Assembly: GCF_000315625.1 (NCBI RefSeq)
Contig: NW_005434625.1
Coordinates: forward strand, 451,726-515,725
DNA from: Guillardia theta CCMP2712
Lineage: Eukaryota; Protista; Cryptophyta
Direction: 5' to 3'
Length of the DNA stretch: 64,000 bases
The notes beneath the pieces were generated by a model. It worked only from the letters and a program-made list of their open reading frames with translations. It made no database searches and was not told the origin of the DNA. Of this stretch, positions 1,765 through 5,920 are shown in pieces. The position numbers and the translations under genes were made by a program. Position 1 is the first letter of the stretch; every line of letters starts with the position of its first letter.

Positions 1765-2070
1765 ACGGTTGTAACGATGAGTCCATAACCCATTCATGCG
1801 ACTGATTGATTACCTTTACATACGATTCATTCATCATTTGACACACACATACTGGAATACCGGACACGAACATGTCCGATCGGTAAGGAGGTGAGGCGAG
1901 GGGCGAGGCAGGGCAGGGAGAGGAGAGGACAAGTCAGAGTGGCAGACAAGGGGATGCTGCAGCAGGGACCCACTTGCAGAGGATGACTGAGCCTGGTCGC
2001 CAGAGAGAATGAAAGGAGAGCCGAGAGAGAGAAAGAGGCGGCAGGGAGGAGACAACAAGCACAGGCAGCT

Positions 2071-5000
2071 TCACTTGGCAAGGAGATCTCGCCAGAACAC
2101 GTAGCTCTCGTGGCTTCCTTCCTTGGTGACCTCATACAGCGGCCGGAGGTGAACCTGCACCCGCATGAAAGTTACCTCCTACTCCACACCCCTCCTCTCC
2201 TCCTCCAGACAACCCCCTTCGCTTGCTCCTCCCCTTCCTCCCTCTTTCCCCCCTACCCCCCCTCACGTCCTTCCCATCTGCATCTGCATCAGCTCGTGTT
2301 CACCTGCACCTCCACGATGTGCGTCTCCACCTCCCCGTTCCGCTCCCACGCGGCGACAGGAACGAAGTGGCAGGTCCGCTCGTCGCTCGTCCAGCCGACC
2401 TCGAGGGAGAGCGAGAGGTTGCGGAAACCCGTCGCCTCCTCGAAGTCCTTCGACTCCTCGTCGAAGCGATTCTTCACCTTGGTGATGCGGAACAGCTTCT
2501 TCCCTTGGCCCTCTCCTCCTCCCTCCCCTCCCTCCCCGTACAGGTCGTGCTGGGTGAAGAAGCCGACGACCGATCGCTCCAGGAGGCTCATCAGCACCCC
2601 CAGCAGCGTCTGCATGTCCTCCACCACAAACGTACATCGCACAAGATCCGTCAGCAGCCCAACGTCCCTGCCATCCAACTCACTCCCTCACTCCCCAACA
2701 GCCCACTCCCCTCCCCCCGCCTGCAGGCTCCACTCCTCCTGNNNNNNNNNNNNNNNNNNNNNNNNNNNNNNNNNNNNNNNNNNNNNNNNNNNNNNNNNNN
2801 NNNNNNNNNNNNNNNNNNNNNNNNNNNNNNNNNNNNNNNNNCCTCGACCACCACCACCACCACCTCCTCCTCGTGCTGCTTCTCCTTTTGTCCCCACTCT
2901 TCTTCTTCTTGCTTCTGCTCCCCTCTCCCCCATCCCCTCTCCCTCAGCCCTCACCTCCTGTAAGCCCTGATGCACTTCTGGAAGCTCCGCAGCGGCTGCT
3001 TCACCGGCCCAGGTACAAACTCAAACTTCTTGACAGGTTCTTCCCCCCCAAAGGTCGCATGAAGCTCAGCTGGGGATGGAACGCTCGTCGGTTGCTCCTT
3101 CTCATGCGTCTGAGTCGCCAGGTAGCTCTCCACGATGGAGCTCAGCACCTGCTGGACAGGCTCGTTGATGCTCGCGGCCTGTGCAAACAGCTGGTCGATG
3201 TCCGAGGATCGCTGCCGCGCCTTGCCGTTGAGGGAGTACCTCCTGCTCTGGTCGAAGTGCGAGGTCAGAAGCCAGACTATGTTGGTCCACTTGTCCTGGC
3301 GCGATAGGGCGCGAGAGTCGTTGGTGATGATGGAGGAGATGCGGCGAGTCAGCACCAGGACGCGACGGAACGCTTCACGATCGTCCTCGCAGCGGCTCGA
3401 GTCCACCACAACCTGTACATCTGCGACCTTACCGCGATGAGGAGCGGGCTCACTCGCCACGCTGAGGCTTTCGATGTTGAACCTCTCCCTCACCCGCTTC
3501 CATCGCTCGTTGTATCGCTCCACGTCCCGGCTGAGATACTGCGACGCCTCCTTACGCACTCGCACCCACAGAACCAAGAGAATCGGAATCATGGCGAAGT
3601 ATGAGCAGGCGATCACAAGCATCAGGTCCCCGACATACTTGTTGGCTCCTCCATTGAGGATCGGGTTGACCGCACAAGAAGCTGGACTGCTCCACAGTAG
3701 ATGAAGATGCCGAAAATTAGATACTCCTGTCGGTAGCGGAGGAGGAGGGAGAGGACAAGGCTGAAGATTATACAGACGATGATCCAGATGAGAAAGCCTG
3801 TTTCCACCGACGTCTCCCACGTCCAGCTCGGGTCGTGCAAGGACAGAGCATGCTGCAGGATCTCGACGAGGAGGGCGAGGACAGCCGTGAAGCTGTTCAC
3901 CGTAAACATCCTCTGAGCAAACCGGCGAGCAACTAGAGGAGACTGGTAACGACCAGCGTAGGAGATGAGGATGATGAGAATGCCTAGCCCGATCTCATTC
4001 AGAGGAGTCATGATGAAGTAGTTTGCCCACAGCAGCCTCGTCCTCCCCCCCCCGTACCACAGGAACGGGTTCGCCATCACGTAAGCCCCAAAGAGGATAA
4101 GACCACTACCATAGAGCGCTACGGCAACCTGGAAGAACACCTTTGACATTGCAATCTCACAAGCGTTACTGGAGAACGTGCAGGACAGTGCAGATCCTCG
4201 CACGTCTGTGTAGTCATCCAGCCTCCTCGCCAGCTTGTGCGATCGCTCGTCCTCCTTGAGCTTCTCGATCGCAGCCGCCAGTCGCAGTCGCAGGCCCAAA
4301 GTCTCTAACTCAGTCCCATTCTCAACCCCAGTAGCTATGCTGAACAGCGTCCACAAGCGATCCACGTCCTCTCTCCTCAGCTTCGCTATGATGTCGAGCG
4401 TGTGCAGGTCTGCAGCATTCAGGATGGGAGCTGCCCGCATCAGGCTGTTCTCCTGTAGCCAGTCCAGCAGCTCCACCCCCGTCGGCGTGTTGAAACGAAA
4501 CCTCCTCCTCCTCCACGAGTCTATGTCCCTACGAACTACATGCAGGATCCTCTCGGCGCAGTCAGTGAAGGGCTGCTCTGACGACATCTGCGACAGCTTG
4601 ATCCCCTGCAGCTTCAAGATCATCCCCACCGTCTCCTTCACCGACCTGCTTCTCATCTCCATCAGTTGCGCTTCCTTCACGCCGAAGCTCCGCAGCAGCT
4701 GCTCTGCCGTGTCGTTGGTCATCTTGGAAGGACGGTCGGGGAGATTCTTCAGCTCCTCCATCGGAAACCTCACCTCTGCCCCCTCCGAGTCCCTGTCCAT
4801 GAACACGGGGAGGATCGAGCGAAGAGAGCTGTCCTCCATCCGCGTCCACTCCAACGCGATGATGTACTCGAGAAGCACGTTGTCCACTCTGTCCGCATCC
4901 TTCAGCGACATCATCCCTCCCAGCGACCCTCCCCCATCCCCCGTCCACGAGAGTAGGGGAACGAAGACCATGGTGTGCACGACTCCGCGAGCAAACGAGT

Positions 5001-5340
5001 CCTCCCAGTTCTTCCCGTCTTCCAGGCATTCCACGTCCAAGAACACCTTAGCACATTGAGGAGGCAGGCCTGAGGGCTTCTTGGTGAAGCCGCACCACTG
5101 ACCTCTCCCTTCGGCGGGGATGGGGAGCCTTGAGGTGGAGACCTCTCGAAGCTGTTTGTAGATCATGTGCGCTATCTCCTTGTCGCATGCCACTCGGTAG
5201 GAGAGGAAGACATGGAAGAGCCGCCCTTTCAAGGAGAAGGGACGCACAGGGTTGTACGACCTGCTCGCAAGGCCCAGCAGCTTGGAGGTGATGGATTGAT
5301 TGTGGGCAACCGATATGTATCCACCAGCTTCTCCGCGCAT
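2071..5340 (-). CDS. TIR + SAM + multi-pass TM + RelA/SpoT-like (small alarmone synthetase-type) nucleotidyltransferase domain protein
   Basis: Inferred exons 5340-3676, 3637-2955, 2667-2304, 2154-2071. TIR: FHVFLSYR, KVFLDVECLEDGKNW, VFVPLLS, DNVLLEY, ILPVF. SAM: ELLDWLQENSL...GLRLRLAAAIEKL. Several hydrophobic helices follow. C-terminal GPVKQPLRSFQK, TDLVRC, KNRF, GFRNLSL, HIVEVQVH, SHESY. Confidence 0.75.
2742..2841. other. assembly gap (N run) within an intron
   Basis: 100 n inside the 2668-2954 intron. Confidence 0.99.
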
Positions 5341-5580
5341 TGTCGCCGGCCGGTCTCAGGTATGCTTTGTCCAGCTCTTGTCCTCCTCACGTTTGGCTGA
5401 GCTCTTATCACACCCAGCGCTTCGGCTCCTTCTCCAGCTACCCCTCAGCGCCTCCTGCTCCCTTCCTGCTCAACTGCTGCCAGGCAAAGAACTTCAAGGG
5501 GTCTAATTTCCCCGATTGTGTTCAGTACATTATAGCCTCAGTAGATCAGACCGGTCAGGTAAAATAACTCTCCTGCCTCC

Positions 5581-5920
5581 TTTACTCAAAGTCTTTACTC
5601 AAAGTTAAGTTACTCAAACGGTCAAGTTGGTCCCGGCGGCGTTGCCGCAGTGCGGCGACCGGGCCCTGTCGAGTCTACTCACGGCCCCGGGGCCCTGCCG
5701 ACTGCTGTCCCCCAAACTTGACTGATATCTTCACTTAACTGCGGTTTCCGAATTCACTGGTGAACCACTCAGGCGGCGGCCCGGCCAGCTGCCACTTGAC
5801 TCAGTGAACCGCCGACCGGGCGCCACGGTGAATGCGCCCGTCGACCGCGGCCCGGGCCTTGAGCGGCCGCCCGGGCCCCGGGCCCGCGGCGGGTCACCGG
5901 AACTTGAATTTGAGTAAAAG
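5581..5920. promoter_or_regulatory. GC-rich intergenic island bounded by inverted copies of the TTTACTCAAAGTTAAGTT element
   Basis: 5594-5611 versus the reverse complement of 5901-5918 match 16/18; lies between divergent genes. Confidence 0.5.

Follow-up and report, generated by a model that had tools for sequence, protein, structure and literature searches.

A cryptophyte multi-pass membrane protein family, represented by GUITHDRAFT_140880 of Guillardia theta, combines TIR and SAM domains with a RelA/SpoT-type synthetase domain

Analysis of a 64,000-nucleotide stretch of the Guillardia theta CCMP2712 genome (the window) revealed a gene whose product unites a TIR domain, a SAM domain, a membrane region and a RelA/SpoT-type (RSH) synthetase domain in one protein. 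This gene, GUITHDRAFT_140880, has a coding span of 2071..5340 on the minus strand, from the ATG at 5340-5338 to the stop codon at 2073-2071, and comprises three exons and two introns. Its product, previously in GenBank as a hypothetical protein, has the domain order TIR-SAM-6TM-RSH and is 944 amino acids long when intact, if the 74-letter version of the segment at 3600-3672, discussed below, is used; the final 330 amino acids of the deposited protein (P0006) are identical to the spliced translation of the window. Both ends of the protein are shared by about 20 relatives, found in Guillardia, in Hanusia and in environmental data, and cluster look-ups of relatives returned a taxonomy almost wholly limited to Guillardia, Hanusia and MMETSP sources. 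Sequence-level domain matches required family profiles: the window's own sequence reached none of the Pfam thresholds for TIR, SAM and RSH domains, and single-sequence Pfam and PDB sequence searches gave a weak TIR_2 match and otherwise nothing useful. A preliminary description of this DNA had called the same four parts, all of which are upheld here, but had joined them by a 38-nt intron that proved to be coding sequence, the RNA contigs carrying 74 letters at the junction.

RNA contigs (X1 and X4) stemming from two studies contain spliced GT..AG joints for both of the other introns predicted in that description, which confirms them. Intron 1 (2668..2954, minus strand) is in phase 2, with the junction codon AG|G, and intron 2 (2155..2303, minus strand; 149 nt), which interrupts the EVQ|VH motif of the synthetase domain, was additionally crossed by one raw RNA read (X19). 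An N gap at 2742-2841 lies wholly within intron 1, 113 and 75 nt from the exon edges, so the coordinates do not give the true length of this intron; its gap-free counterpart in a near-identical paralog measures about 200 nt. We rejected a hidden exon within the gap, as the gap is intronic and the relatives have no extra residues at the junction, and for the same reasons the gap costs no coding sequence.

The proposed 38-nt intron (3638..3675, minus strand) was likewise rejected. No read or contig contained the corresponding joint, the paralog has an A at 3675 where the proposed donor has a G, and the supposed intron encodes VNPILNGGANK, residues that both the intact ortholog and transcripts of Hanusia phi conserve; the relatives read straight through the site. 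The deposited models contain micro-introns, by which P0006 omits 3723-3686 and P0002 a larger part; these were also rejected, since the relatives retain the one or two membrane helices that these models thereby lose. The deposited gene models of both copies are therefore wrong, their invented micro-introns deleting membrane helices.

What joins the two halves of the protein is a difference between the assembly and the expressed sequence. At 3600..3672 (minus strand) the assembly contains, in both copies, only a 73-letter form that is one base short relative to the ortholog and breaks the frame, whereas RNA contigs have 74 other letters. The 74-letter version was found in RNA contigs X1, X4 and X12 (joint 3599/3673) and in one DNA-like run, and its length connects the codon ending at 3673, in the upstream frame, with codon 3601-3599 of the downstream one; it is thus in frame by length, and the ortholog is the basis for assuming that it contains no stop codon. 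A pattern scan of metagenomes found no instance of the 74-letter replacement segment, and no G. theta protein derived from transcripts of this gene was present in the protein database. RNA contigs X1 (2513-4974) and X4 (2535-5016) span the break and both confirmed introns and connect the TIR region with the synthetase region, and in the ortholog (L011) a single unbroken frame of 796 codons leads from the ATG as far as the first intron. With its 74 letters at 3600-3672, one more than in the assembly, the expressed sequence joins the TIR and synthetase halves and the fusion holds, yet the window copy as assembled is frameshifted.

The longest open frame of the assembly stops at 3622, as would be expected if a TIR-SAM-membrane protein ended there and an independent synthetase gene lay downstream. 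We regard such an arrangement as highly improbable: the RNA contigs cross the site, contradicting the notion of transcripts ending at 3622 with the two parts as separate genes, the ortholog frame is unbroken, and the relatives have the same architecture as a single protein. Moreover, the site offers neither a start codon nor a promoter-like gap, and the stop sits within a conserved membrane helix.

The distribution of the two versions bears on the state of the window copy itself. The 73-letter version occurred in six DNA-like runs from four studies and in 0 of 11 RNA-like runs; since those six DNA-like runs carry it, the window itself may contain a broken copy or allele. A recently broken gene (a pseudogene or null allele), with the full protein made only from another copy or allele with 74 letters, would match the out-of-frame version held by both assembled copies, and its confinement to DNA-like runs fits silencing or nonsense-mediated decay. 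We consider this explanation quite possible but do not favor it, in view of three observations. RNA contigs of X1, a run without intron coverage, show the window-specific 5' and 3' ends together with the window-type helix 2-4 region; Ka/Ks relative to the ortholog is well below 1 on either side of the break (0.195 upstream and 0.34 downstream); and the near-identical copies form an inverted repeat with an assembly gap, such that the assembly may have assigned to one the sequence of the other, and the contigs cannot phase the variants. The window-specific flanks are at 5224-5417, 3760-4010 and 1927-2066.

The N-terminal part of the protein is a TIR domain, with a core at residues ~40-200 (4741..5223, minus strand) recognized from predicted structure and sequence. 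Foldseek searches with the AlphaFold model of this region (pLDDT 79.7) returned exclusively TIR domains as top matches, and in VIA-align comparisons the best structural match was the SARM1 TIR domain (9hq0_A; Z 14.1, rmsd 2.3, 140 of 140 residues aligned, 30% identity), the alignment extending to residue 270. C. elegans TIR-1 scored Z 12.2, and the TIR domains of TIRAP, MyD88 and plants scored Z 11-13. Although the window's own sequence reached only 14.8-16 bits against Pfam TIR_2 (PF13676), below the threshold of 28, this threshold was passed by the relatives P0058 (34.2 bits) and P0078 (28.6 bits), and the TIR region alone matched PF13676-carrying proteins with E 3e-11. The Glu that had been noted at the usual NADase position is Glu158 of the DNVLLE motif (4867..4869, minus strand); it lies within helix 154-166 of the predicted model, at the helix start where TIR NADases have their catalytic Glu. 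Of 20 relatives, 16 retain it, and the adjoining Leu156 is invariant. Motif and fold together make Glu158 the putative equivalent of SARM1 E642.

Downstream of the TIR domain, residues 286-361 (4258..4485, minus strand) form a five-helix bundle that matches SAM domains structurally, confirming the SAM-like region called earlier. A model of residues 285-369 aligned by VIA-align with the SAM domains of CASKIN2 (Z 8.5, rmsd 2.4, 67 residues aligned) and p73 (Z 8.1, rmsd 1.3, 60 residues aligned), values that are not high for a helical domain, although the matches span whole SAM domains. At the sequence level, Pfam SAM_2 was matched by 9 of 20 relatives (best E 1.7e-4) and SAM_1 by 5 of 20, with no match of SAM profiles to the window's own sequence, and the family profile gave weak matches to ephrin-receptor SAM domains among PDB sequences (E 0.015-0.3).

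The multi-pass membrane region that follows (3565..4140, minus strand) was evident in a hydropathy scan and comprises six predicted helices in the intact ortholog (P0001), with the frame break separating helix 5 from helix 6. As the predicted helices are even in number, the TIR and synthetase ends are implied, though not proven, to lie on the same side of the membrane. One relative has two membrane helices around a 421-residue loop with an F5/8 type C (discoidin) domain, and this loop fits an outward-facing sensor.

The C-terminal domain is an RSH synthetase-like domain (2074..3226, minus strand, over three exons; residues ~693-931 of P0006). In a Foldseek search with its model (pLDDT 88.5), the approximately 47 top matches were all RSH synthetases (E 3.9e-5), and VIA-align placed RelQ (5ded) first at Z 15.0, with SAS2 at 14.1, CapRel at 12.4 and 12.0, and Tas1 at 10.9. 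These results contradict the possibility, raised in advance, that the domain lies outside the RSH fold: 24 RSH entries occupied the range Z 15.0-9.6, the next fold being the Pol X family at Z ~8-9, and an ESM Atlas shape search returned RelA_SpoT clusters. Among solved RSH sequences, the family profile matched only Tas1 (E 2.8e-8, profile positions 36-106, corresponding to the first half of the domain), with no match to the others, CapRel included. Pfam RelA_SpoT (PF04607) was matched by 12 of 65 relatives (best E 4.5e-5) and not by the window's own sequence, and a word-index search with the profile, aimed at bacterial relatives with names, returned only unnamed environmental proteins.

The motifs of this domain lie where the preliminary description had placed them and correspond to invariant columns of a 65-sequence family alignment, in which K768, R772, K776, R779, D790, R793, E902, Q904 and R926 (GUITHDRAFT_140880 numbering) do not vary. 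The basic motif K768-x3-R772-x3-K776-x2-R779 (GPVKQPLRSFQKCIR; 2966..3001, minus strand) aligns with PIKSRERAMQK of Tas1 and corresponds to the triphosphate-binding G-x-x-K-x3-S-x3-K segment of RSH synthetases. D790 and R793, in TDLVRC (2637..2648, minus strand), occupy the RSH metal-binding Asp strand and align with KDLARN of Tas1, and E902-V-Q904 (2304..2312, minus strand) corresponds by motif and fold to the catalytic E-x-Q strand of these enzymes. The family shows the conserved RSH motif set, which comprises the basic segment, the Asp strand, G-Y/F-R/x-S and the E-x-Q strand. Judged from the motif, the Asp-to-Arg spacing in TDLVRC appears shorter than in canonical RSH enzymes, and with this difference the chemistry could differ as well.

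Since housekeeping small alarmone synthetases and CapRel score at least as high as Tas1 in structure, the structural ranking does not single out one product for the domain. The higher Z values of CapRel relative to Tas1, and the statement in PMC11782079 that toxSAS act by tRNA modification or (pp)pApp synthesis, would agree with a tRNA pyrophosphokinase similar to CapRel or FaRel2, which would block translation through tRNA 3' CCA ends and make no free nucleotides. This assignment seems unlikely to us, given that the family profile singles out Tas1 among the solved RSH sequences and that identity in the structural alignments, too, peaks with Tas1 (21%).

Comparison with known systems suggested partial likenesses to several of them. 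The TIR domain resembles SARM1/TIR-1 most closely in structure, is paired with a SAM domain and has a Glu at the putative catalytic helix; however, SARM1 is arranged ARM-SAM-SAM-TIR, whereas here the TIR domain precedes a single SAM domain, no ARM repeats and hence no ARM autoinhibitory domain were found, and the protein additionally has six membrane helices and another enzyme domain. With Toll-like and other membrane TIR receptors the protein shares a membrane location and a cytosolic TIR domain, both predicted here, and one relative has a discoidin domain in its long inter-helix loop. Unlike those receptors, it is multi-pass, has no LRR ectodomain and carries its TIR domain at the N-terminus, where it is predicted to be enzymatic and of the SARM1 type.

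The synthetase domain has the same fold as toxSAS (FaRel, FaRel2 and CapRel), which serve in anti-phage defence, and as the housekeeping SAS RelQ and RelP, and like these it is a single-domain synthetase that lacks a hydrolase domain; those enzymes, in contrast, are bacterial or phage proteins, soluble and controlled by antitoxins or a pseudo-antitoxin domain. The plastid RSH proteins of plants and algae (RSH1-4 and CRSH) are eukaryotic proteins with the RSH synthetase fold, but they are long RSHs that have either EF hands or a hydrolase and a TGS domain, are plastid-targeted and give Pfam matches easily, and the G. theta protein has none of these traits. The Pseudomonas aeruginosa type VI secretion toxin Tas1 (PDB 6ox6), the only solved protein matched by the family profile, shares with it the segment P-x-K-x2-E/L-R-x2-Q-K ... 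D-L-x-R-x-T. Tas1, which produces (pp)pApp, is a toxin that bacteria secrete by means of a PAAR delivery domain and that is paired with a cognate immunity protein (PMC7229694); here, in contrast, the domain forms the C-terminus of a eukaryotic membrane protein in which no PAAR domain was found.

Taken with the RNA and structural data, these comparisons suggest that GUITHDRAFT_140880 is one member of a cryptophyte family encoding a single multi-pass membrane protein, with TIR and SAM domains at its N-terminus and, at its C-terminus, a pyrophosphokinase-type RSH domain nearest to Tas1 by sequence, that is probably an effector of immunity or cell death anchored in the membrane. Oligomerisation mediated by the SAM and TIR domains, as in SARM1, would be driven by a stimulus sensed within or across the membrane and would turn on the TIR NADase, and the adjacent synthetase domain would transfer pyrophosphate from ATP to an adenine or guanine nucleotide. 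The outcome would be the consumption of NAD+ and ATP and the buildup of toxic or signalling nucleotides.

The preliminary description had instead proposed a sensor coupling NAD+ cleavage to nucleotide synthesis. In such a protein both domains would yield small amounts of signalling nucleotides, possibly sequentially, for separate downstream receptors and would not drain NAD+ or ATP. Many TIR domains indeed produce cADPR-isomer signals and leave NAD+ undepleted (10.64898/2026.04.20.719644), and the best structural matches of the synthetase domain are housekeeping small alarmone synthetases. Its nearest sequence relative, however, is Tas1, a toxin of very high turnover, the nearest TIR domain is that of SARM1, an NAD+ depleter, and no receptor for such a signal was identified in this analysis, which leaves the sensor a rather doubtful reading. 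With Tas1 and SARM1 as the nearest relatives, the protein is no less likely to be an effector that depletes its substrates than a sensor that makes messengers, and another G. theta TIR domain is reported both to make cADPR and to deplete NAD+ (preprint 10.64898/2026.04.20.719644). More speculatively, and with only a slim chance in our estimation, the TIR domain might convert NAD+ to an ADP-ribose-derived nucleotide that the Tas1-like domain then pyrophosphorylates (or it might act on ADP or ATP), yielding a novel type of immune nucleotide in eukaryotes. Protist innate immunity would in that case include alarmone-type chemistry.

Literature searches found no published protein with the TIR-SAM-membrane-RSH synthetase architecture, in agreement with the claim made at the outset that none had been described, the protein itself having been deposited only as hypothetical; full-text searches likewise found no description of a Tas1/toxSAS-type synthetase in a eukaryote. 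TIR NADases and toxic RelA/SpoT-type synthetases are established in bacterial anti-phage defence and inter-bacterial killing, and TIR domains are known from eukaryotic immunity. The family described here combines both enzyme types on one membrane protein, beside a SARM1-like SAM-TIR pairing. If the activities hold, it would give eukaryotes a second chemistry of bacterial type for nucleotide-based death or defence and provide a tractable model for combining NAD+ and ATP chemistry. In practical terms, users of the reference assembly should note that it differs from the expressed sequence at the frame break and that the models deposited for the two copies are in error.

Finally, a profile of the synthetase-like domain gave 140 exon-level matches in the G. 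theta genome, an expansion to dozens of loci as expected of conflict genes, and, were the two enzymes to act in sequence as outlined above, these matches would represent an immune repertoire. A second G. theta subfamily was also observed, whose representative, in which no Pfam domains were found, has two synthetase-like domains in one 1033-codon frame.

GUITHDRAFT_140880 is encoded on the minus strand, with its ATG at 5340 and its stop codon at 2073-2071, and its product is already in GenBank as a hypothetical protein of 931 aa. As the preliminary description proposed, the protein very probably combines four parts: a TIR domain, a SAM domain, a multi-pass membrane region and a RelA/SpoT (RSH) synthetase-like domain. 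The protein's own sequence gave a Pfam match in its N-terminal half only to TIR_2, below threshold, and two relatives, P0058 (34.2 bits) and P0078 (28.6 bits), exceeded the threshold of 28 bits; the TIR region used as sole query recovered proteins carrying PF13676 (E 3e-11). Residues 1-400 were modelled with AlphaFold using 20 relatives (mean pLDDT 79.7). The model's top match among 48,161 representative chains was the TIR domain of SARM1 (Z 14.1, rmsd 2.3, 140/140 target residues, 30% identity), followed by many further TIR domains, and Foldseek was concordant. Glu158 (codon 4869-4867, minus strand) belongs to a DNVLLE stretch at the beginning of helix 154-166. Sixteen of the 20 relatives have Glu there, and, judged by motif and fold rather than by residue-level alignment, the residue probably occupies the catalytic-Glu site of NADase-type TIR domains. 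A TIR domain of a different G. theta protein (UniProt L1IYH1, 1337 aa) is reported to make cADPR and to deplete NAD+ (10.64898/2026.04.20.719644). By eye, that domain has the D-x-V-L-x-E-W motif in a helix in common with the family studied here, and its helical extension resembles that of the family.

Structure comparison matched residues 285-369 to the SAM domains of CASKIN2 (Z 8.5) and p73 (Z 8.1, rmsd 1.3), and nine of the 20 relatives have a Pfam SAM_2 match. The membrane region shows six hydropathy peaks in an intact ortholog (P0001, locus L011), and because the predicted number of helices is even, both ends of the protein would face the same side. In P0058, two helices flank a 421-residue loop containing a F5/8 type C (discoidin) domain, suggesting that a sensor can be accommodated in the region that faces away from the enzymatic parts.

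An exhaustive search with the C-terminal domain returned 207 representative relatives. In an alignment of 65 sequences, 12 of the 65 have a Pfam RelA_SpoT match. The residues picked earlier as synthetase motifs are invariant columns of this alignment (K768, R772, K776, R779, D790, R793, E902, Q904 and R926). Comparison of the family profile with solved proteins gave one sequence match, to Tas1, a T6SS (pp)pApp synthetase toxin (E 2.8e-8). The model of the domain (pLDDT 88.5) has the RSH fold, matching RelQ (Z 15.0), SAS2 (14.1), Rel (13.5), CapRel (12.4) and Tas1 (10.9), with unrelated Pol X nucleotidyltransferases next (Z ~8); the highest identity among the RSH structure matches was to Tas1 (21%). 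A tRNA-modifying, CapRel-like action of the domain is an alternative to the Tas1-like chemistry suggested by the sequence match.

RNA-derived contigs from two studies (X1 and X4), aligned to positions 1900-5600, confirmed two predicted minus-strand introns through GT..AG joints skipping 149 letters (2155-2303, also joined in one raw RNA read) and 287 letters (2668-2954). X1 had zero coverage inside the introns, indicating that it is RNA and not contaminating DNA. A run of N at 2742-2841 falls entirely within intron 2668-2954, whose flanking exons start 113 and 75 nt away; the equivalent intron of the paralog GUITHDRAFT_140871 is gap-free and ~200 nt long, and relatives read ...AYRR/DVGxLTDLVRC across the junction (codon AG|G) with no residues between. 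Hence no coding sequence is lost to the gap, which affects intron length alone. Because the X1 (2513-4974) and X4 (2535-5016) contigs extend from within the TIR domain over the frame break and intron 2668-2954 into the synthetase domain, the fusion is real for the expressed gene.

The 38-nt intron (3638-3675) that had been proposed to join the two halves did not hold up. No contig or read examined contained a 3637/3676 joint, the paralog has A in place of the donor G, and the stretch encodes VNPILNGGANK, conserved in the ortholog and in Hanusia phi transcripts. The ortholog, on a metagenome contig and 94% identical, reads from ATG to ...AYRR as one unbroken 796-codon frame, and both assembled G. 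theta copies are one base short of it near 3675. The deposited model of GUITHDRAFT_140880 bypasses this frameshift with a micro-intron that skips 3723-3686 and loses helix 5, and that of GUITHDRAFT_140871 loses helices 4 and 5 in the same manner; these micro-introns are unsupported and delete conserved membrane helices. Measured against the ortholog, Ka/Ks is 0.195 for the part upstream of the break and 0.34 for the part downstream, values indicative of purifying selection on both halves.

The X1 and X4 contigs and the DNA-like run X12 have 74 different letters in place of the assembly's 73 at 3600-3672. Since a codon of the upstream frame ends at 3673 and the downstream codon is 3601-3599, the intervening letters must equal 2 modulo 3; 74 letters satisfy this and 73 do not. 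In the ortholog the same interval is exactly 24 codons plus 2 letters long. The 73-letter version is nonetheless real DNA, because six DNA-like runs of four studies, including runs of the X12 sample, contain all of its sampled words; none of these words occurred in any of the 11 RNA-like runs. The 74-letter version was not found in the G. theta reference assembly. The organism thus has both versions, with only the one whose length keeps the frame represented in RNA contigs. They may be alleles or one per paralog, the assembly having put one into both, an assignment limited by the fact that contigs drop minority paths. For the locus in the window alone, a recently broken copy is a possible reading. 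All sampled words of 3592-3682 were also present in a lake-water metagenome run (X26); G. theta-like DNA seems to be in that sample, though X26 is flagged as a run from which the window's DNA may have come.

GUITHDRAFT_140871 is an inverted, near-identical copy ~22 kb away and outside the window (NW_005434625.1:429869-433038). Identity is ~100% over most of the length, introns included, with differences clustered in the first 70 codons and membrane helices 2-4, a pattern that points to either gene conversion or a partly collapsed assembly.

Approximately 20 proteins from Guillardia, Hanusia, MMETSP transcriptomes and metagenomes have both the TIR-SAM and the synthetase ends, under the public names hypothetical, TIR-domain-containing or SAM-domain-containing only; elsewhere the synthetase-like domain is joined to kinase and HEPN domains. 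A profile of the Tas1-like domain gave 140 exon-level matches in the G. theta genome, for example in L014:1893-4994 (contig C86), C1:833992-843102, contigs C30 and C206, and C49:530462-533077 (the contig of the window). Among them are at least eight paralogs of the TIR-SAM-membrane type, as well as another set in which a single long frame carries the domain twice. Many matches lie in stop-free frames of ~1020-1500 codons, the two domains ~2 kb apart. No Pfam domain was found in a 1033-codon two-domain example. By profile matching, the domain is a large uncharacterised expansion in G. theta.

By analogy, the protein may act as an immune or cell-death effector consuming NAD+ and ATP, a mode of action we favour tentatively; architecture and mode of action taken as one statement are reasonably probable. 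The pairing of a SARM1-like TIR domain with SAM points to oligomerisation as the activating step, the Tas1-like domain to transfer of pyrophosphate from ATP, and the membrane part to sensing at a membrane. Tas1 synthesizes (pp)pApp (PMC7229694), and toxSAS enzymes work either by modifying tRNA or by making (pp)pApp (PMC11782079). A messenger-making sensor, the role first proposed, is an alternative to the effector. Full-text literature searches turned up no account of a Tas1/toxSAS-like domain in a eukaryote or, in keeping with the earlier claim of novelty, of this architecture. All four parts are of known kinds; what is new is their combination and eukaryotic setting.

In the ORF list, a plus-strand open frame at 837-1619, convergent on the 3' end of GUITHDRAFT_140880, contains GHSMGG, a nucleophile-elbow motif typical of alpha/beta hydrolases, and continues into a proline-/serine-rich low-complexity repeat.
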